Shown: positions 1 through 30,547 of the stretch, in pieces
Position numbering within the stretch: position 1 is the first letter of the stretch
Layout: each line of letters opens with the position of its first letter
Source: Paramoeba atlantica
Taxonomy: Eukaryota > Protista > Discosea
Assembly (NCBI GenBank): GCA_977017575.1
Contig: CDRNVI010000004.1
Span: forward strand, 620,001 to 684,000
Direction: 5' to 3'
Length of the DNA stretch: 64,000 nt
Program-made: the position numbers and the translations under genes
The notes under the pieces: model-generated
What the model was told of the DNA's origin: nothing
Seen by the model: only the letters and a program-made list of their open reading frames with translations
Databases searched by the model: none

Positions 1-70
1 TTCCGGTTTAGCTGAGTTTTGCCGTATTCTGCCATATTCTGCCTATCACCTCACCGGCCGGCCGCCCCCC

Positions 71-335
71 TCTTAGATACGGTTTCTGCACCTTGTTGAC
101 TTTCTTTCCCCAGCAACGGGCATAGTCTTACTGTATTTTTATGCCCGTTACCGGCCAGTACTAAGGCCGAAACTGTCTCTCTCTATTGTTGAAGCAGGGG
201 ACGCGCTTCTACCCCTTTACCCCTTCCCGACTCACTCCCCTGGAGTGAGTGTGCTTACCTCTCTCGGCTTTCTTCGACTTTTTTTCTCTCCGAGAGGGGC
301 ATGTGTCACGGTGGCCTCCCTTGAGGACCACTAGA
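71..335 (+). mobile_element. Degenerate 5' part of the SL-headed short element (homolog of 29081-29370)
   Basis: TCTTAGATACGGTTTCTGCACCTTGTTG (71-98, SL-exon-like) followed by colinear similarity to 29140-29370 (CAACGGG.CATA..CTTACTGT..TATGCCCGTT; CTAAGGCCGAAACTGT; GGGGACGCGCTTC; GGTGGCCTCCCTTGAGGACCACT). Confidence 0.8.
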
Positions 336-10461: not shown

Positions 10462-10499
10462 GAATTAACGATAAAGATTACAGTTTCTGTACCTTGTTG
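10462..10499 (+). ncRNA. Spliced-leader exon-like sequence (relic, not a complete SL RNA gene)
   Basis: AATTAACGATAAAGATTACAGTTTCTGTACCTTGTTG matches the euglenozoan SL core ACAGTTTCTGTAC...TTG; no recognisable SL intron or Sm site follows. Confidence 0.8.
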
Positions 10500-10651
10500 A
10501 TTACATTCCTTGTTGTTTTATTTCTAGTCTCTCACTCCCACATGCCCGCCTGGGAATTCCCCAAGAGAACATGCCGTGATTGTGATCGCCGATTCAAGCG
10601 AATAATGCGTACAAAATCTGTCCGAAATGTTTTCTCGGCGCTAAGGAGCCA

Positions 10652-11635
10652 ATGGTGGCAGGAGTGAAGACTGAAGATCTATTTCAACTTTTTACGTCTT
10701 TCATTTCCTCTCTCTCCGAAAAGAGAACAGTTGCTCACAACCTTCGCCGGGGGGACCATCATATTCGTGGTCTCCAAACGCGCGCGAATGTGGACAACGC
10801 GAATGTGCCGTCTGGTCGTGCAGGTAAACGCCCGGCCAATAGTTCCAAGGGGGATCTCACAGAATCTCAAAAACGACTTGATCCAGCTCCCGCAGTTCAC
10901 AATCCGTTTTCGTCTCTTCGTTTCTCGAAGGGCAGCTCGAATGAGGACAAGAAGGCTCCATCACGTCTGACTTATTCACACGTGACAGCTGGTCATTCTC
11001 TCAAATAGTCCAAAAAACCCGCAAAGTCGAACTACGGGACTTCCACCACGTCCCGCTTGTCTCCCTTCCCCAAACGCGCAGGTGGGACTTCACGCCTAGA
11101 TGACGACCAAGTGGCCTCTAAGCCGAAAGCGCTGAAACCAGGGAAGTCCTTTGCAGAACGGTTTGGGGAACTGAAGCGGGAGCTTCAGACTCAGGAAGTC
11201 GCCAAGTACGGCGCTCTTCATAATACGATTGCAATCCACAAGTTACAGACTCAGAGTCTCAAGCTAGAATACAAGTGGATGTTACAAGCTCGGCGTCTGC
11301 AGGAACAACACATGCACCACATGTTAAACCTGCAGCAGCAGTGCCAAAATGCACTGCGGATTGTCGAGCGCGGTGGCCACATTTGTTCCACATGCCATCG
11401 CAAATTTATGGATCAGTCTTCCCTGGAGGAACATCAGCGGTCGCACTCCGCCGCTAGGGAGAAGCAAAATGCGAGATTTATTCAATCTCAGGCGCTGAAA
11501 AGAGAAAGCTTGTTTTTGTCATATCAAAATGCGAGATCGCATAATAAATCAAGAGGAAGATTCCAGCCTCCACATCGCGTCGCGATTTCTTCCTCGCGTT
11601 ACCCACCTCCACCTCGAACGTGCGCCGCCACCTAA
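10652..11635 (+). pseudogene. CRE ORF1 (coiled coil plus C2H2 zinc finger) with an in-frame TAG at 11006-11008
   Basis: ORFs 10652-11008 and 11057-11635 are in one frame separated only by TAG; CSTCHRKFMDQSSLEEHQRSH. Confidence 0.75.
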
Positions 11636-14600
11636 ACGTGCTACCCCCAGTTCTAGGCCTTCCATTGACGAACCAGGTGGTTTCGGCGGCGAGTGGGATG
11701 AAGATGATATTTCTTCCCTTGATTCGGAGACTCATGCATCCTATGTGACCAAAGTGGCGTTGTTCCTGGAACCGGAGAAAACGTCCCACGTCCTGGTAAC
11801 AGGGCTCAGCCCAAGCGCGTCACTTGGATTGCTCCGAGATCACGTGGCAGCCACAATTCAACTCCCAAACAGCCTTATTCAAATCGTGGATCCGACCTCA
11901 TATGAAGAGTTACCTCTCTCTGGGATTATCGGTCCCCCGACGACGGAATGCGTGTACGGGGCTACTATCAAGGCCCCACCAGGAGAAAAGTCAGGCAACG
12001 AAATCCCAATTTATTGTCAAATTGAAGATCACCCAATCCGTATACCTGAGGGTGTAGCGCCGGTTGAGTACCCTGTTGCTATCTGCCACTTTCTAGGCAT
12101 TGAACTTTCTTTGTCAAAATCCTGGGAACAGATTAAGGATGCGAGCGGGGTTTCATGGTGGTGCTTTAGGCCACCGGAAGTTCTGTCATCAGAAACTGGC
12201 TGGTCCAAAGACCAAGTTCATACATGGTTAATAAGAGGGGGTATTGAGAGCAACCCCGGCCCACGGGCAGTGTGGTGTTTCCGGTCAACTAAAAACGTCA
12301 TCGCCAACTCTGGTTGGTCCAAAGCGCAAGTACGCACCCAGCTGATCCGAGGCTGCATTGAAAGCAACCCCGGACGGGGTAAGAAGAGGGGCCGACCCCC
12401 CGGAAGAAAGTTCACACCTTCAGGTTCGTTGGATCTCGGGTCACTTCAGATCCAAGCAGACTCGACGATAGAGGAAAACCCAGGCCCGGAGCGCCCACGC
12501 GGCCGGCCCAAGGGAAGCAAAACAAGAGTTAAAGATGTGTTGAATCTGGAAGAAATTCACCCTGGAAGCCCTTGCATATCTGGGGCCTCAGAAGCAGTCC
12601 CACGTGGGACCATACTGGAGAAGATTGCGGGAGGAATATTCGAAGATTGTTCAACCAAAGAGGTTCAATCGGGATCGCATATCTCACAGAAACTGTGTAA
12701 TACGACAAATCTTCCGCCTCGTCAACTCCACGAAATACAAAGCCTGTGGGAAACATACACAAAACTGAATACGCGACCTAGTCTGCGTAAATTATATCAC
12801 CTGCAATTACCGTGCTGGAAGGAATTATGCGGTGGAATATGCAGAGACTTTGAAATACAACACACAGACACAAAAGCAAAGATGTCGTGGAACCTATTAT
12901 GCGCAGTGAAGCAGTTCTTATTCCTGCCCGAAAGTCAACTGACTCATCGGCAACTGGCTTATGAACTACGAAAGCGGATGGCCGAGCAAGAACCAAAATT
13001 TACCCCTTCGCTTGCAACCAAAAGTGTGGCAAAATTTGACCCGGTAGGCCGAGCAGAGGCACTGCTTAAACTTGGTGCGATCGGGAAAGCGGCAAAAGCG
13101 CTAGAGGCGAAGGAACGACAACCACTATCTACTGAAGAGATCGCTAAGGCCATAGATCGACTTCACCCAAAGACCTTTCGGGGTTATAAACATTTGCCGG
13201 CAAAATCTATGGACATCGAAAAGCAAACCTTAACTGACAGGGCTAGAAAGCTCGCCAAAGGATCCGCGCCGGGCCCATCAGGCTGGACACGCGAACTTCT
13301 TATACCGCTCCTAGAGGACCAGGATATCGTGGCCTGCGTTACTTGGATAGCTACAGCAGTGCTGCGAAACTCCCGAGACGCTCAGCTAAGGGACGTCTTA
13401 ACCAGCTCCACTCTGATCTTGCTGCGCAAGGAGGGCCCTTCCGTAGAAGGATCCCCAGCCTTCCGACCTATAGCAATGGGGGAAATCTTTCTTAAATTGG
13501 CTAGCCAAATCGCCATGGACAGGGTAGCAGAAGCAACGGGCAGACTTTTCCAAGATACACAATTTGGTGTTGGAACAAGAAACGGAGGACCTAAAATAAT
13601 ATTAAGGGCAAGAAACGCGTTTCGTCAAAAAGCGGACTTTGTGCTCTTGACAGTAGACATCCGTAACGCCTTCAATTCAATTGAAAGAAGCGCGGTGTTT
13701 CAGTATCTAAGGGGAAATGATGAATTTCACGAGCTATACGGGGTGACCTCATATGTATATCGGGCTCCAACTACGATATTTAACTCGTCGTGTTCGCCGA
13801 ATAAGGTTCTGAGGGGAGTCCGACAAGGCGACCCATTAGGACCGTTACTGTTTTCTCTCGGCTTGCACCAAATTCTTGGAAAATTAAAGGATGAGTTCAG
13901 TGATCTGACGCTTTGGGCTTACCTAGACGACCTTTCAATCATCGGCCCGGCAGAACGTGTCGCACAGGCGTTTGGCGCTCTCTGTGATCACGCTTCGGGA
14001 ATAGGACTGGAGGTACATCCGGCCAAATGTAAGCTTTCGACGCATTTCAATGACCAGTACGCTCCTTTCAGAGGTATGAACATAGAGCATGCGGAGCAAG
14101 GACAAAAGCTCCTAGGTGCATTCGTCTCCAAGGAAGGCGCGGATGAAACCAGATGGGTAGTCAACCAAATGCCTAAATTGCAGACATTCCTGGATCGGCT
14201 GCAACATCTCTCGTTACAAAGTGCTTACATTTTGCTGAAGAGATGTGGAGTCCCCCGGTGGGACTACCTAATGCGGTGTCATGAGCCGGAGGTAACGGCA
14301 AAAGCCAACGTGTTAGCGGACAAGGCCATACAGGAGTGTGCCTCAGAGCTGCTAGGAGGCCTCGAAGACCTGGAAAAGAACCCGTTTCACAGTACTCTCA
14401 TGACGGGCGACCTTTTGGGGGCGAAACCTTTTGCGCAGCAAGCGGCAACTCTGTATTCTCGCACAAAAGCTGAGGTATTAGGGTGTATGGAAAGACGACG
14501 TTCTGCCTTGACAAGATATGAAGAGTCGAAGTCAGCAGTGCGTAAAGAAACCAGCGAACTACATGACGTCCATTCACTTCAGTTGATGGACAAGAGAACG

Positions 14601-15278
14601 CGCAATTGGACAGAGGCGCGTAGGAATCGGGGTGAGTACTTCATGCGCGACGCAGAATGGCAAACAGCCATGCGCATGCGATACTTGATAGCACCTACTT
14701 CGGACCCTTTCGCACAATGTGAGTGCGGAGACATCCTCTCAAACAAAGATTTTGTTGTGCACGCCCTTGACTGCAATAAAGTCAAAGGCGACACTGCGGC
14801 CACTCGCCACAAACTTGTTAAGAATGCCTTCGTGCACTTGCTACGACAGTACGGATTCACTCCTGACAATCATGAACCCCGATTCTCTGCTGGTCAGGGC
14901 CCCGACGTCTGCTTTATGCTGGGAGGGAAGATATGTCTGGTGGACGTGACCGTCGTTAACCCCCTCGCCCCTTCTTATGTTAAGGCCGAATGGGTAGCGC
15001 CTGGCAACACTCTAGAAAGGGTGGAAAGCTTGAAAGTAAAAGCGCACAGTGACATGGCCACGAAAAGGGGTATGCATTTCTACCCCCTTGCATTTACCGT
15101 TTTTGGTGTGGCAGGGAAGCACACCGTACTCCTCCTAAAGGAGATCGCAAGGTATACGTATGACAGGAAAGGTTTCCTGCGTCATGCACTACAAGCCATT
15201 AATGTGGTTGTTCAAAAAGGCAACGCCGCGATACTATCCTCCGCGGTAAAAGAGTGGAGGAAGGCGGGTGTCCGCTAA
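11529..15278 (+). CDS. CRE ORF2: 2A-like motifs, AT-hooks, reverse transcriptase, CCHC knuckle, restriction-like endonuclease (1249 aa, intact)
   Basis: SAPGPSG, FRPIAMGE, VDIRNAFNS, GVRQGDPLGPLLFS, AYLDD, CECG..H..C, RH, PD, VDVTV, ESLK. Confidence 0.95.
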   Translation: MRDRIINQEEDSSLHIASRFLPRVTHLHLERAPPPKRATPSSRPSIDEPGGFGGEWDEDDISSLDSETHASYVTKVALFLEPEKTSHVLVTGLSPSASLGLLRDHVAATIQLPNSLIQIVDPTSYEELPLSGIIGPPTTECVYGATIKAPPGEKSGNEIPIYCQIEDHPIRIPEGVAPVEYPVAICHFLGIELSLSKSWEQIKDASGVSWWCFRPPEVLSSETGWSKDQVHTWLIRGGIESNPGPRAVWCFRSTKNVIANSGWSKAQVRTQLIRGCIESNPGRGKKRGRPPGRKFTPSGSLDLGSLQIQADSTIEENPGPERPRGRPKGSKTRVKDVLNLEEIHPGSPCISGASEAVPRGTILEKIAGGIFEDCSTKEVQSGSHISQKLCNTTNLPPRQLHEIQSLWETYTKLNTRPSLRKLYHLQLPCWKELCGGICRDFEIQHTDTKAKMSWNLLCAVKQFLFLPESQLTHRQLAYELRKRMAEQEPKFTPSLATKSVAKFDPVGRAEALLKLGAIGKAAKALEAKERQPLSTEEIAKAIDRLHPKTFRGYKHLPAKSMDIEKQTLTDRARKLAKGSAPGPSGWTRELLIPLLEDQDIVACVTWIATAVLRNSRDAQLRDVLTSSTLILLRKEGPSVEGSPAFRPIAMGEIFLKLASQIAMDRVAEATGRLFQDTQFGVGTRNGGPKIILRARNAFRQKADFVLLTVDIRNAFNSIERSAVFQYLRGNDEFHELYGVTSYVYRAPTTIFNSSCSPNKVLRGVRQGDPLGPLLFSLGLHQILGKLKDEFSDLTLWAYLDDLSIIGPAERVAQAFGALCDHASGIGLEVHPAKCKLSTHFNDQYAPFRGMNIEHAEQGQKLLGAFVSKEGADETRWVVNQMPKLQTFLDRLQHLSLQSAYILLKRCGVPRWDYLMRCHEPEVTAKANVLADKAIQECASELLGGLEDLEKNPFHSTLMTGDLLGAKPFAQQAATLYSRTKAEVLGCMERRRSALTRYEESKSAVRKETSELHDVHSLQLMDKRTRNWTEARRNRGEYFMRDAEWQTAMRMRYLIAPTSDPFAQCECGDILSNKDFVVHALDCNKVKGDTAATRHKLVKNAFVHLLRQYGFTPDNHEPRFSAGQGPDVCFMLGGKICLVDVTVVNPLAPSYVKAEWVAPGNTLERVESLKVKAHSDMATKRGMHFYPLAFTVFGVAGKHTVLLLKEIARYTYDRKGFLRHALQAINVVVQKGNAAILSSAVKEWRKAGVR

Positions 15279-15643
15279 TTGAAATTCCATTCTGAATTGA
15301 TAAAGATACCTGAAGGAATACTTCAAGGACTTACACGACACTGAGTTAAACCACAGAACCCAGTTCCGACGTCAATACATAGTGCATAATAGTACAATAA
15401 ACCGTTGCTGTGGACGAAAAAAGTATTTCGCTTGTTGAACACTGAGAAAAAAACCAGAGAAAAATATCTCAGATACGGAGAAGAAATACCACAAAACGGA
15501 GCTCTGGACGTACGAATATTATCGCAATATTACCACATATTCTATTTACCGCAATTCAATTGATATTTACCGCAATGTATACCCTGTATGCTACGATACT
15601 CTATATGTATGATACTCTGTGCGCCATGTAGTTCGATATTATT

Positions 15644-25911: not shown

Positions 25912-26384
25912 TACTTGTTCTTCTTGTGAACACTCCCTGGAAGATGATGCATACTGCAGATCCCATCTTTCACGATTCCATGAGACTTCAGAAAGCTGGA
26001 AAAGTCACGAGGGATATCAGAATCGTTTTTCCATGTGCGGACACATCGAAGATCAGAACAAACACAAGGTGGGATAGTGAAAAACGCGCGGTAAAAAGTC
26101 AACTTATGTGAGTCTTAGCAACAAAATACAATAATACTTCATTATCTGTTGATATATTCATTTTTGCCCGCAAAGGAGACAAAAAACGTGTAAAAAACGA
26201 AAAAGAAATCGGGATACAATATAAATAGGATTCAACCGGGGGTTCTATTACTGGGAGGCATATTATTGGGGGGTCTATTACACGTGGGTTTACTGTATAC
26301 CGTTACCCCCCCTTACTTCGCCTCCCCCTTTACTTCACCACATTTAGTCACTGGACGTGTGGTGAAGTAAGGGGGGTGTCAGAT

Positions 26385-26480
26385 TCTCCAGACAACTTAC
26401 CACCTCTTTACACAGCCGGAGGGGTGCACTGCAACCGACTGTAGCATCGGGGTAAGGCGAGGCAGGGCAGTGGTCTTCAA
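26385..26480 (-). mobile_element. Partial copy of the structured core of the SL-headed element
   Basis: Reverse complement CCCTTTGAAGACCACTG..CTGCCTCGC...GTCGGTTGCAGTGCACCCCTCCGGCTGTGTAAAGAGGTGGTAAGTTGTCTGGA matches 29356-29460. Confidence 0.8.
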
Positions 26481-27327
26481 AGGGGGGGACACAGATGGCG
26501 CACAAAGATCGATGCACAAAGGTTCTTGGTGCAACTTTCTTGGTGAAGACGACGCCGTCATACCGGGATTTTAAGCCACAGTCCGGTTTAACGTTCCGGG
26601 GGGAATGTTAACGGCTACAGGAATGCTACGTAGCTGCAGGAATGATAACTTTTGAAGATTGTCTTGGGTTCGTCGACGCAACGGGTTAGTAGCAGCACGT
26701 TGTTGCTGCCTTGTACCAACGAAAACAGTTAGAGGACTTCGGCCTCGAAAGTTTCAAATCTATCTGTGAAGGGTCTGGCCTGCCAGTGATCAATCGGAGC
26801 AATCCGGAATGACTTAGATTCGTTGAACCATTTCTAATTCAGAACAATTTTCTTCCATGTCAGTTTCATCATCGCTTTGATTATAAAGTTGCGCCACAGT
26901 GTTTTGTAGTTCTAAAATTTAAGTTGATATTCAATAGGTTATATTCTGCGACAACATTTAAATTTTACGATGTAAGAAAATTTCATGGGGGGAAAGTTAA
27001 AAATGCATGGGACATCGTAGACAAACTAAAAGAAACATAAAATATTAAATGTGCAACACGAGGTATTACAACAAATGCATCTCTTAAAAACACGTATCAT
27101 CCAAAAACATGTATCAGCCAAGACCCTGAATATATCGTTCAAAAACCTTTATCTTCCAAATTATTTATCGTCCAAAGAATATGTACCATCTAAGACATGT
27201 ATATCAGTTATTATGGGGTGTCAGTCGCAAGCTTCACATTCCCGGTAACGATCCTTTCTTGGTTGACCATTTGCATGGTTCTAAGCCAGAGCGCCACGGC
27301 AAGGCGAAGGATCCAGCTCTGGTTACA

Positions 27328-28291: not shown

Positions 28292-29080
28292 GTGATTAGA
28301 AAATATTTTGTTAGATACATTAGATAATATTTTTATTTACAATGTACAATAATACCAATGTTAATTTTTGTATTTCTCCTATTTATTTGTGAATTTCGAT
28401 TGTTTTCATTTCTCCACACTAGTTAGCAATTGTCACCATGTACCGGGTAATTACCCGATTTACTCTGTTAGGTATGTATTCTGTAAAGCCTAATAAAGCA
28501 GGTTATCTTCCTTACTAATGGTATGAAAAGTATTCTATTGATTTGGTTATTCGTGAAAATGTTCAGACCTACCCAAAACGCCGCACCCTTTTGTGCAGTG
28601 GTTAATACAAAGGATGTTTCCAACGTGAATCCTGGAACTCGACTACCCAGCAAAGTGCGAGGAGCGAATTTGCCACAGGAGTATGAACTCGCACGATTCA
28701 TCGAAAATATTACGAACCCGCATGCCACCTGGACCTCATCAACCCCTGCGTGTGAGTGGCAAAATGTATTCTGTCAAGACGACACATACGTTGTGGTGCT
28801 CGAGTGGGATTGTTTACGTTTATCGGGATCAGTTCAGTGGATGTGGCTTCCGAAAACAGTATTGAGCTGTGATTTTTCAGGTAACAATCTTTCTGGAACA
28901 ATACCGTTTGAAGTTTTACCCCAAGGTCTCGCGTCACTAAATGTCGGTTCCAATAAATTTTTCGGTGTACTCGACTTGAGCCATATAGTAAGTGAATTGG
29001 ACAAATTGTATTTGGGTGATAACAAGTTTCAGGGCTGTGTAGATCTCACCCATCTTCCTGAAACGTTACATGAATTAAGA

Positions 29081-29114
29081 GATCTTATAAAGATACAGTT
29101 TCTGTACCTTGTTG
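29081..29114 (+). ncRNA. Spliced-leader exon-like sequence followed by a GTA donor-like trinucleotide
   Basis: ATAAAGATACAGTTTCTGTACCTTGTTG|GTACAT. Confidence 0.8.
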
Positions 29115-29670
29115 GTACATTTTCCCTTTAGTTCATCTTTTCTTTCCCCGGCAACGGGCATAATCTTACTGTTTTATATGCCCGTTGCCGGCCGGCACTA
29201 AGGCCGAAACTGTCCCTCTTTCTCGGCGAAGTAGGGGACGCGCTTCCACCCCATCACCCCTCCCCGGCTCACTCCTTGAGTGGGTTTTCTTCCCTCCCCG
29301 GCTTTCTTCCCTTCGCGCCCTTTTCTTCCCGGGGAGCCATGCGCCATGGTGGCCTCCCTTGAGGACCACTGGGCGTGGCTCTGCCTCGCATTATCGCGAG
29401 GCAGCGGTCGGTTGCAGTGCGCCCCTCCGGCTGCGTAAAGAGGTGGTGAGTTGCCTGGACCACCTCTACCGACTGGGACCGAGTCGGTTGCAGTGCGCCC
29501 CTCCGGCTGCGTAAAGAGAGGGCGAGTTGCCTGGACCCCCTCTACCGACAGAGTCCGAGCTAAACCCCCTTGGTGCGACATCCGTCAATACGGATTGTGC
29601 CGATGATATCGGCTGTCGCATCCAGGGCTGTATCTCTGCGCCAACGAGCGCATGAACATCAAAATCAAAA
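29081..29670 (+). mobile_element. SL-headed, non-coding, structured SINE-like insertion
   Basis: Starts GATCTTATAAAGATACAGTTTCTGTACCTTGTTG|GTAC, many perfect stems, two 76-nt tandem units, A-rich end ATCAAAATCAAAA, related copies at 71 and 26385. Confidence 0.85.
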
Positions 29671-30547
29671 CTTCAATACAATTCTCTTTCCGGAGATGTC
29701 GATCTCCGTAGTTTGCCTCAGTGGCTACGGCGCCTCGTGTTGGGTTTCAATAAGTTTACAGGACCACTTCACCTAACGCGTTTACCTTCGTCGCTCCGAG
29801 AACTCTACTGCGATCACAACTACTTTTCTGGTCCTGTACAGCTAGATCGTCTTCCCAATCGATTAATAAAATTGTTCCTTGATAGCAACTCGGAGTTGAG
29901 TGGTAAGATTGACAAGGCTGATTTTCCTCCGTCACTGGGCGACTTTCGATACACCGACACAAAAATATGCCATGTCTCATAAATTTATTTATCATGACAT
30001 TTGTATTTTATTTTGTAAAGCTTTGTCTTTCATTTTTATCTCATTTTATCTACTAAAAACGCCAATTGAATTTGTGCAGATCATCTCAATTAGAATATGA
30101 ATTGGAGTTTACAGCCTTGGTCTTATCGTAATCTTCGTATTTAGACTTAATTTGGTGGAGTAAATAAATGAATTATTTGAGTTACTGTCACCCAATCCAT
30201 CGTGTTTAGTTTCTGAGTTCAACCATGTTCAAACCATGTTGTCGTTCCCCTCGCATTGTTGGATGGCGTCCTCCTCTGCAACGGGTAATCATTTATTTAA
30301 TGTGCACGGAGGGAACACTCTACAGTACAAGTACATTGACCATAGAGTATCGTATTCTTGCTCCATTTTTATCCGGAGCTGCCTACGGGCGAGTCTTCTC
30401 ATTCTGTGACTAGTTAAACTTCTCGATGGTAGTTTTTTGAGTTTCATGTAATTTTTTACTTATTTTTACCCTTGTTTTTGTAGGAGGGCTGAAACCCTGG
30501 GAAATGAATATAAGTTCTTGTTTCTCTACCATACTTAATATTTTTAG

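Follow-up and report, generated by a model that had tools for sequence, protein, structure and literature searches.

A probable spliced-leader-headed SINE that uses the 3' end of R2-like LINEs interrupts one allele of an LRR gene in a kinetoplastid genome

One allele of an LRR gene is knocked out by a non-coding insert that is best read (probability about 0.78) as a SINE-like, non-autonomous non-LTR retroposon, headed by part of the spliced leader (SL) and using the 3' end of R2-like LINEs, in a kinetoplastid with SL/5S arrays. The insert lies in a window of 64,000 nucleotides (contig CDRNVI010000004.1, positions 620,001 to 684,000, forward strand), to which all positions below refer unless a contig is named. 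The gene and the insert are composed as follows.

28523-29079, + strand: upstream part of the interrupted LRR gene (ORF; weak LRR_1 match; continuous in the empty allele)
29080-29087, + strand: 5' junction filler AGATCTTA (missing in the empty allele; junctions of 29 copies)
29088-29664, + strand: family unit "SINE-A", 577 bp, non-coding (copy boundaries; no coding signal; no Rfam family)
29088-29114, + strand: head, a DNA copy of SL nt 12-38, TAAAGATACAGTTTCTGTACCTTGTTG (identical to the exon of real SL genes)
29104-29118, + strand: hairpin GTACC / GGTAC, joining the SL tail to the first body bases, GTAC (consensus fold of 11 relatives)
29148-29191, + strand: 15-bp perfect hairpin of a conserved 5' module (arms 29148-29162 and 29177-29191)
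29381-29404, + strand: 9-bp perfect hairpin CTGCCTCGC / GCGAGGCAG (arms 29381-29389 and 29396-29404)
29407-29558, + strand: two tandem 76-nt units, 91% identical, with an internal stem in each
29632-29664, + strand: 3' terminal motif, ATCTCT + hairpin (TGCGC / GCGCA) + ATGAACATCAAAA (common to R2-like LINEs)
29665-29670, + strand: 3' stutter TCAAAA, repeating the element's last six bases (not in the empty allele or other copies)
29671-29982, + strand: downstream part of the LRR gene, LQYNSLSGDVDL... (ORF, empty allele, LRR match)

Comparison of the filled and empty alleles shows that 591 bases (29080-29670) stand in place of one T, and that they consist of 8 filler bases, the 577-bp element and a 6-base repeat of the element's own tail. 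An initial annotation of this DNA had recognized the insert but given its extent as 29071-29680 and its length as 590 bp; the insert is real, its true limits are those above, and the unit common to the family is 577 nt. The upstream part of the gene ends in ...His-Glu-Leu followed by the AG of a Ser codon. Empty LRR alleles, the search for which had been proposed as a check, were found both on contig C9 of the same assembly, where the flanks are identical and the LRR frame is intact, and on a contig of another sequencing sample (run X3); both read ...GAATTAAG-T-CTTCAATAC..., and an uninterrupted ORF (...LPETLHELSLQYNSLSGDVDL...) runs through the empty allele (L079). The earlier claims that a non-coding insert breaks the gene and that its excision restores the LRR frame are thus confirmed by real alleles, and since the empty allele matches in its flanks and keeps the frame intact, the insertion is recent. 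There is no target-site duplication: in the filled allele the insert takes the place of a single base and no target sequence is repeated, in keeping with the earlier statement of no duplication beyond about 3 bp. The missing duplication fits RLE-type LINEs. At the 5' junction the last A of the filler may be SL A11, and its AGATCT is also present 30 nt upstream in the target. The insert ends ...ATCAAAATCAAAA, as had been reported; the second TCAAAA lies outside the family consensus and is specific to the LRR-gene copy, and comparable 3' stutters occur in two further copies (L014, L034).

The element is devoid of coding signal, since a Pfam search gave no match, the differences between subfamilies A and B are spread evenly over the three codon positions (12/10/9) and some of the indels between them shift the frame; the earlier finding of no meaningful ORF is borne out, as is that of no TIRs. 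Its fold is far more stable than those of shuffled sequences (z = -7.6 for the + strand and -7.3 for the - strand), and the perfect stems described before are present with arms of 15 and 9 nt, and between subfamilies one pair of the former has undergone a compensatory change (C-G to A-U). The 76-nt module is also found in another element, at 26387-26465 on the - strand. Rfam, applied to the whole window at gathering scores, returned no tRNA, 5S, 7SL, snRNA or ribozyme family, and applied to the element at E up to 10 gave three far sub-threshold matches, none of them a small-RNA gene or ribozyme. Two candidate structures were rejected: a hand search for an HDV-like 5' fold yielded a 5-6 bp AU pairing alone, which is lost in subfamilies B and D, and an 8-bp pairing of the head (AGATACAG) with the 3' region was treated as chance because it is not kept in subfamily B.

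A genome search returned about 40 copies at 94-100% identity with sharp ends, their matches beginning at query positions 12-20 (mostly 16-18) and ending at 592-604 (mostly 594-595), and the head is common to roughly 190 relatives; the SL tail followed by GTA occurs at 234 genomic sites, about 40 of which are real SL genes. Dispersed copies with defined ends, as the initial annotation had expected, therefore exist in number, and the contrary case that it had allowed for, that there are no others, does not apply. Like a classical SINE the element is short, non-coding, dispersed and multi-copy with defined ends; the pol III-gene head of classical SINEs (tRNA, 7SL, 5S, snRNA) is not present, its place being taken by SL nt 12-38. 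The description of the insert as a short, structured, non-coding retroposon with an SL-derived 5' end thus stands.

The true SL exon, read from about 40 SL genes, is 38 nt, and the head of the element comprises only its bases from about 11/12 to 38 (27-28 nt), the AGATCTT ahead of it being filler and not SL; the statement that the insert begins with an SL exon plus GTAC was correct as to the SL-derived start and the GTAC but not as to the exon, which is partial (nt 12-38 of 38). The accompanying argument, that the GT after the exon indicates a genomic SL-gene origin, fails because the body is unrelated to the SL intron and because the true SL unit is a 2555-bp repeat with a 5S gene. The real SL intron begins GTATGAGAAGCTTCG, of which only GTA is common to the element, and over the following 100 nt the element, aligned globally to the intron, scores like shuffles (z = -0.07). 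The element is not derived from an SL gene, and the SL/5S repeat unit contains a decayed antisense relative of the SINE and nothing closer. That an ordinary SL gene repeat unit (an equivalence raised in the initial annotation, which does not apply) or an SL RNA retrocopy has moved into the LRR gene would agree with the SL sequence and GTA at its start and with a size within the range of SL repeats in some kinetoplastids, but is already refuted by the size and content of the real unit, by the unrelated intron and by the fact that SL nt 1-11 and the promoter are missing from the element; moreover, the genome has true retrocopies of SL RNA at other places, and these, made up of the exon + 67 nt of intron, look different. 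In the assembly 34 SL genes with a promoter were matched, of which none is interrupted at SL nt 11/12, and a master copy inside an SL gene was rejected, as 0 of the 34 run on into GTAC.

Mimicry of SL RNA by the element, with the truncated leader and GU serving as a splice donor or trans-splicing decoy, is also most improbable. The hairpin GTACC / GGTAC, which pairs in 9 of the 11 relatives in the consensus fold and is kept in subfamilies A-D, does copy the donor-site stem of real SL RNA (GTACC / GGTAT); against this, GTAC is palindromic, so that the pairing needs four bases only, and AATT stands at the corresponding place of the related LINE head. The cap-proximal 11 nt are absent, and there is neither a likeness to the SL intron nor a recognizable Sm-site context.

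The last 33 bases of the element match a terminal hairpin motif, ATCTCT-hairpin-ATGAW, which the SINE subfamilies have in common with the ends of R2-like LINE ORFs. The motif has 384 genomic matches (vs 7 for the reversed control), and its stem shows compensatory changes in 4 of 6 pairs, with none of 500 shuffles reaching the observed score. It is found about 75 nt past the long ORFs of a large LINE superfamily, where the tail reads ATCTCTGCAGTTAAACTGCATGAATATCAAAA, and, in no fewer than 9 additional LINE subfamily copies, at the distance expected. The SINE thus shares its 3' end with an autonomous R2-like LINE superfamily, in fold and flanks only, the SINE stem (GCGC) differing in sequence from every LINE stem read; of six LINE families, either CRE-like or with poly(A), none carries the SINE tail at its 3' end. 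The LINE ORF has RVT_1 and zf-RVT, its alignment with R2 proteins (9nl3_A, 9dou_A) extends to their C-terminus, and the partner LINE is accordingly predicted to encode a reverse transcriptase plus a C-terminal R2-type region. The R2-like LINEs are themselves SL-headed, with SL tails just upstream of ORF starts at C3:859555 and C2:874786 (starts estimated from ORF lengths), and the first 28 post-SL bases of the SINE align to the head of an SL-headed R2-like LINE. We infer from these sequence likenesses that the SINE is probably mobilized in trans by the R2-like LINE protein.

A different partner had been proposed in the initial annotation, in which the insert and the window's CRE (10467-15284) form an autonomous/non-autonomous pair. 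The two have in common the SL head alone, and their tails and target sites differ, so that this pairing finds no support, and the case of an internal deletion of one CRE, also raised there, does not apply. It is very unlikely that the element is an internally deleted CRE derivative mobilized by this CRE: SL sequence starts both elements, and at the 3' end each has a small GC hairpin and behind it a short, A-rich tail lacking poly(A), but nothing is alike past the head, the tails are unlike (TAATTGAAA vs ATGAACATCAAAA, the CRE ending ...GTCCGCTAATTGAAA), CRE copies sit in AT-rich, non-LRR DNA, and the tail motif of the SINE belongs to another LINE superfamily, the R2-like one. Nor is the TGAATTAA noted earlier at both the SINE and CRE junctions a target motif common to the two; at the SINE it represents the LRR codons His-Glu-Leu-Ser and is present already in the empty allele, and TTAA at the CRE junction is SL nt 5-8 of the CRE's own head. 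Only two full-length CRE 5' ends occur in the genome, too few for a test of head inheritance.

The SINE has a preference for LRR targets. An LRR motif is found just past the junction in 11 of 29 copies, vs 8 of 1200 control positions (0.7%), and 10 of the 11 sit at one fixed position, allowing for tail stutter or A-run ambiguity in two copies; subfamily D inserts at that position too. Counting against the main reading, 0 of six LINE copies read (from the subfamily with loop TTAAA) are in LRR genes. An SL-like target was considered and rejected, the 3' flanks of 28 copies not exceeding shuffles in likeness to the SL (best z = 2.1, 17 offsets).

These observations can be assembled into a mechanism, in which mobilization by the LINE protein, production of the 5' end of the RNA and the source of the head are conjectural. 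The SINE RNA would be non-coding and highly structured, and at its 5' end it would have the final 27-28 bases of the leader, encoded in the DNA, and behind them a stretch of a few tens of bases similar to the beginning of the 5' UTR in the SL-headed R2-like LINEs. The reverse transcriptase/endonuclease of an R2-like LINE would recognize the 3' hairpin and copy the RNA into a nicked target by target-primed reverse transcription. Two strand cuts nearly opposite each other would leave no target duplication and, at the LRR gene, the loss of one base; stuttering of the priming on the tail would add the extra TCAAAA, and untidy joining of the 5' end the filler. The machinery would favor one position of the LRR coding repeat, 9-11 nt before a conserved Asn codon. 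The head itself would first have been gained from an RNA carrying the leader at its 5' end, and would now be inherited with the element and not added afresh in each round, because the copies trace to several source lineages and none carries an AG acceptor in front of the body. That head starts cluster at SL nt 10-12 (among the copies, T12 in 5, A11 in 11 and G10 in 6) is not explained by this main reading, and the heads of some relatives that reach SL nt 3-6 are not predicted by a purely inherited short head.

Addition of a fresh leader in every round, by one or a few master genes making a trans-spliced non-coding RNA of which the copies are retrocopies, dead on arrival, is unlikely, but several features speak for it. 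In every copy inspected the SL joins the body exactly; the heads of relatives, extending as far as nt 3, never include nt 1-2, as if reverse transcriptase stopped at the hypermodified cap; stacked, truncated partial leaders are present in the genome; and the SL tail equals the host SL across subfamilies that are 13-20% divergent right beside it, an identity that could reflect renewal rather than inheritance. On the other side, no locus was found with an AG acceptor immediately before GTACATTTT and then the body, a candidate master arrangement that gave 2 matches vs 3 for the control, both without body; the copies carry TTG, not AG, directly before the body position; private variants shared among copies define at least 4 parallel lineages and argue for several sources; and the majority of heads begin at nt 10-12 instead of the cap.

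It is conceivable, though doubtful, that the leader head of the inherited element is a working part retained from SL-gene-targeting ancestors and not a passive scar. The point at which heads begin is the CRE-clade cleavage site in the SL gene (nt 11/12), and at C41:280840 an SL promoter and full exon run directly into an element of the partner LINE class (one such fusion). If this were true, an element with nt 12-38 landing at nt 11/12 would rebuild a perfect SL exon, which would provide transcription, capping and export from the SL promoter without trans-splicing; in off-target copies the leader might be trimmed to nt 11/12 by the element's endonuclease or by end-joining, and template switching onto abundant SL-bearing RNAs might preserve the identity of head and host leader.

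In some SINEs, such as UnaSINE1 of eel with its partner UnaL2, the 3' stem-loop is taken from a "stringent" LINE. The element resembles these in being short, non-coding and multi-copy and in having a 3' hairpin and tail common to LINEs (with covariation tested here), but differs in that their tRNA/7SL/5S head with an internal pol III promoter is replaced by the 3' two-thirds of the SL and LINE-like 5' UTR bases, and in lacking target-site duplications. The short internally deleted elements (SIDEs) of R2 in Drosophila are non-autonomous passengers of an RLE-type LINE that, comparably, keep LINE ends and insert with little or no target duplication; here, however, the 500-nt body is unrelated to the LINE sequences read, the targets are LRR coding repeats and not rDNA, and a 5' ribozyme was not detected (Rfam, E up to 10). 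RIME, NARTc and SIDER of trypanosomatids are likewise kinetoplastid non-autonomous retroposons with a 5' end common to their LINE, but they belong with the ingi/L1Tc (APE-type) clade and have the Pr77 signature and target-site duplications (PMC12278014, PMC8190864), in place of the SL tail as 5' signature and RLE-type LINE partners seen here. CRE1/2, SLACS and CZAR are kinetoplastid RLE-type LINEs inserting between SL nt 11 and 12 (PMC5814959, PMC12278014), the point at which most SINE heads start; those elements sit in SL genes, whereas the SINE is dispersed, carries SL nt 12-38 itself and does not have a CRE tail. Dinoflagellate retrogenes, which are ordinary genes, have relict spliced leaders at the 5' end, cut at an internal AG (PMC6050394, PMC5585692); there as here a DNA copy of the leader marks passage through RNA, with stacked truncated relics in this genome too, but here the leader heads mobile-element families and is truncated at nt 10-12 with no AG adjacent. 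In the literature searched no description of SL-headed SINEs in kinetoplastids was found, and the SL string was likewise absent; kinetoplastid non-autonomous retroposons are reported there for the ingi/L1Tc clade only, and kinetoplastid SL-associated LINEs are described as strictly SL-gene specific.

On the main reading, this genome would harbor an active R2-type LINE/SINE system that uses the host leader as its 5' end outside SL genes, and whose SINE inserts into a large family of surface-type LRR genes at a single codon position, making it a natural, polymorphic insertional mutagen of LRR genes. It would be a case of a SINE head made from a pol II trans-splicing leader, and would offer a tractable system for the question of how non-LTR elements get a defined, translatable 5' end under polycistronic transcription, with the covarying 3' hairpin as a handle for template-recognition experiments.

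The LRR reading frame in which SINE-A (the SL-headed retroposon) lies is interrupted by 591 bases between 29079 and 29671, with weak LRR matches in Pfam on both sides of the insert. When the span 29071-29680 was compared with the window's own genome, 40 matches at 94-100% identity were found, with first bases at query positions 12-20, most at 16-18, and last bases at 592-604, most at 594-595; these sharp limits define the repeated unit as 29088-29664, 577 bp, and the copies are dispersed with defined ends. A diagnostic 28-mer from the 5' part of the unit occurs 26 times in the genome, and the head (the element's 5' bases derived from the spliced leader, SL) followed by GTA occurs 234 times, ~40 of them in true SL genes. 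The element is real and active.

The interrupted LRR gene and its insert (window positions)
28523-29079: LRR frame, upstream part, from its opening (basis: reading frame)
29088-29664, + strand: SINE-A, 577-bp repeated unit
29671 onward: LRR frame, downstream part, where it resumes (basis: reading frame)

The 380 bases that precede the insert are present at two places in the assembly with 100% identity, and the second, on contig C9, carries an empty allele (...CATGAATTAAG-T-CTTCAATAC...) whose LRR frame is unbroken (...LPETLHELSLQYNSLSGDVDL...). The same empty joint is present in contigs of sequencing run X3, from another sample of this organism, and the filled form in run X1. These empty alleles confirm the claim of the initial annotation that excision restores the frame. 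The single T at the empty joint was exchanged for three pieces: a 5' filler (AGATCTTA), the 577-bp unit, and TCAAAA, which repeats the last six bases of the unit. Comparable tail stutters occur in copies L014 and L034, and the last A of the filler may be SL base 11. The insertion into the LRR gene is thus recent and occurred without target duplication. C9:67-91 kb matches the window (contig C4) in reverse orientation at the three places read (CRE 3' end, 99%; CRE 5' end, 2 mismatches in 30 nt; LRR flank, 100%); both haplotypes are therefore present in places of the assembly, and copy counts are partly doubled. Further twin pairs are L025/L026, L051/L052 and L054/L055.

The true SL genes (~40; ...gttAACTTTAACGATAAAGATACAGTTTCTGTACCTTGTTG / GTATGAGAAGCTTCG...) are arrayed in a unit of 2555 bp (L061:1824-4379; contigs C107 and C97) that also contains a 5S rRNA gene (99 bits) on the opposite strand. 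After the leader, the element agrees with the SL intron only in GTA; aligned globally, the 100 bases that follow score as shuffles do (z = -0.07). SINE-A is thus not an SL repeat unit, and the GT after the exon, which had been taken to point to an SL-gene origin, does not do so; the head is SL-derived as annotated, but comprises only bases 12-38 of the 38-nt exon. The SL unit also carries a decayed antisense SINE relative, its leader head replaced by a (CT)n run, which is an old insertion and not the source. Separately, dispersed copies in which the SL intron is limited to its first 67-69 nt lie at C6:27023-27089, C25:199013-199081, C83:132963-133029, C87:74326-74392 and C87:106884-106950, with the SL exon shown to precede four of the five; these look like retrocopies of whole SL RNA.

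The start of the head, scored as the extent of match to the SL, varies among 28 independent copies, in 20 of which the base before T12 is A.

Head starts in 28 independent SINE-A copies
T12: 5 copies
A11: 11 copies
G10: 6 copies
nt 9: 1 copy
nt 6: 1 copy
Altered or rearranged: the 4 remaining copies

The insertion site of CZAR and SLACS lies between SL bases 11 and 12 (PMC5814959), at the modal head start of SINE-A copies, which we offer as a coincidence needing explanation and not as a finding. Heads of related subfamilies and other element families extend up to C3 (CTTTAACGA...), and SL bases 1-2 are never present in them. No genomic locus was found with a splice acceptor directly before GTACATTTT and the body; of the 34 promoter-bearing SL genes matched, not one is broken at bases 11/12 or continues into the SINE; and the private variants common to at least four parallel groups among 30 copies require several source copies. 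Together these results indicate that the head is inherited along with the element. Counting against a purely passive relic are the 27-base leader tail, identical across subfamilies that diverge 13-20% directly beside it, and the minority of heads that are longer; both could result if reverse transcription switched template onto leader-bearing RNAs.

The window's CRE-type LINE (10467-15284; RVT_1 and C2H2 finger domains), proposed in the initial annotation as the autonomous partner, shares only the leader with SINE-A; the element is thus not a deletion of it. Some 15 CRE copies end within one base of ...GTCCGCTAATTGAAA in AT-rich, non-LRR flanks, and the pairing is rejected. The SINE tail is likewise absent from six more CRE-like or poly(A)-tailed LINE families. 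The CRE, which has a twin on C9, is headed by SL nt 5-38 plus one extra T and flanked on both sides by TTCTGAATT; its 3' flank goes on with GATAAAGATAC, matching SL nt 10-20 over 11 bases.

SINE subfamilies A, B, D and F have in common a tail of ATCTCT[R]C, a hairpin and [RY]ATGA[AT], matched 384 times genome-wide versus 7 when reversed as a control. The stem has many variants, in which both arms change (for example TGCGC/GCGCA, TGCAG/CTGCA, TGCAC/GTGCA, TGCAGG/CCTGCA and TACAGG/CCTGTA); in nine distinct tails compensatory changes occur at 4 of 6 pairs with 92.6% of cells paired, values reached by 0 of 500 shuffles, and slid controls collapse. The 17 copies with a TTAAA loop end in ...CATGAATATCAAAA, and in the full-length ones read the motif lies ~75 nt downstream of a long ORF whose last 974 residues contain RVT_1 and zf-RVT and align to R2 proteins through the R2 C-terminal part. 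This R2-like LINE superfamily gives >150 matches, many copies having open frames of 1400-1860 codons; at least nine more subfamily copies have the motif at the expected ~900 nt past the query region. The LINEs are also leader-headed: SL tails lie at C3:859555 and C2:874786, just ahead of ORF starts whose positions were estimated from ORF lengths. The SINE's first 28 post-leader bases can be aligned to a head of this kind (55 nt with the leader, 87% identity). The SINE is thus LINE-like at both termini with an unrelated body, and on sequence grounds the R2-like LINEs are its probable partner.

On either strand the 577-bp unit has a much better fold than shuffled sequence (z = -7.6 and -7.3), the stems annotated initially are exact, and its open frames are not coding, as had been stated. 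Eleven relatives (subfamilies A-F) differ in their bodies and have in common a 5' module of three hairpins: GUACC/GGUAC, which links leader tail to body; a 14-bp stem containing one compensatory pair; and a stem of 6 bp.

N-x-[LFIVM]-x-G follows the junction in 11 of 29 copies, and in 10 of these 11 (allowing for tail stutter in the window copy and A-run ambiguity in L010) the Asn codon lies 9-11 nt past it, a result given by only 8 of 1200 control positions at the same loci. Subfamily D inserts at the same LRR position; the remaining copies lie in a (GT)n run, LINE ORFs and other SINEs, and no R2-like LINE copy read lies in an LRR gene. Copy L007 (C40:571237-572094) has landed in the leader head belonging to an older copy of subfamily B and is flanked on either side by GATACAGTT, and L004 (C3:785146-788729) and L016 (C20:399374-402954) lie within long LINE ORFs, the host of L016 being an R2-like LINE.

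Other leader-headed or related sequences
Window 70-332: older leader-headed SINE relative, ~81% identical to SINE-A positions 52-283; SL tail degraded, without GTAC
Window 26250-26800, - strand: GC-rich non-coding element with one copy of the SINE's 76-nt module, 86% identical
G000:C41:280600-287300 (L082, L083): apparent SL-promoter/LINE fusion

Modules seem to be shuffled among element families. On contig C41, 240 bp of genuine SL-gene upstream sequence (98% identical) and a full 38-nt exon are joined straight to AATTATTTTC... and a 450-codon ORF; the SL intron is absent there and from the rest of C41. Apparently an SL promoter here drives a leader-headed LINE, and 1354 nt farther along another SL-headed element begins. 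Leader tails followed by a non-G base occur at no fewer than 825 sites in the 45.7-Mb assembly, including stacked partial leaders (...CCTTGTTG / TACCTTGTTG and ... / CTTGTTG). The SINE thus belongs to a set of leader-headed retroelements that spans the genome, and SINE-A is a variation on the LINE/SINE theme, neither a new kind of system nor an SL-gene derivative.
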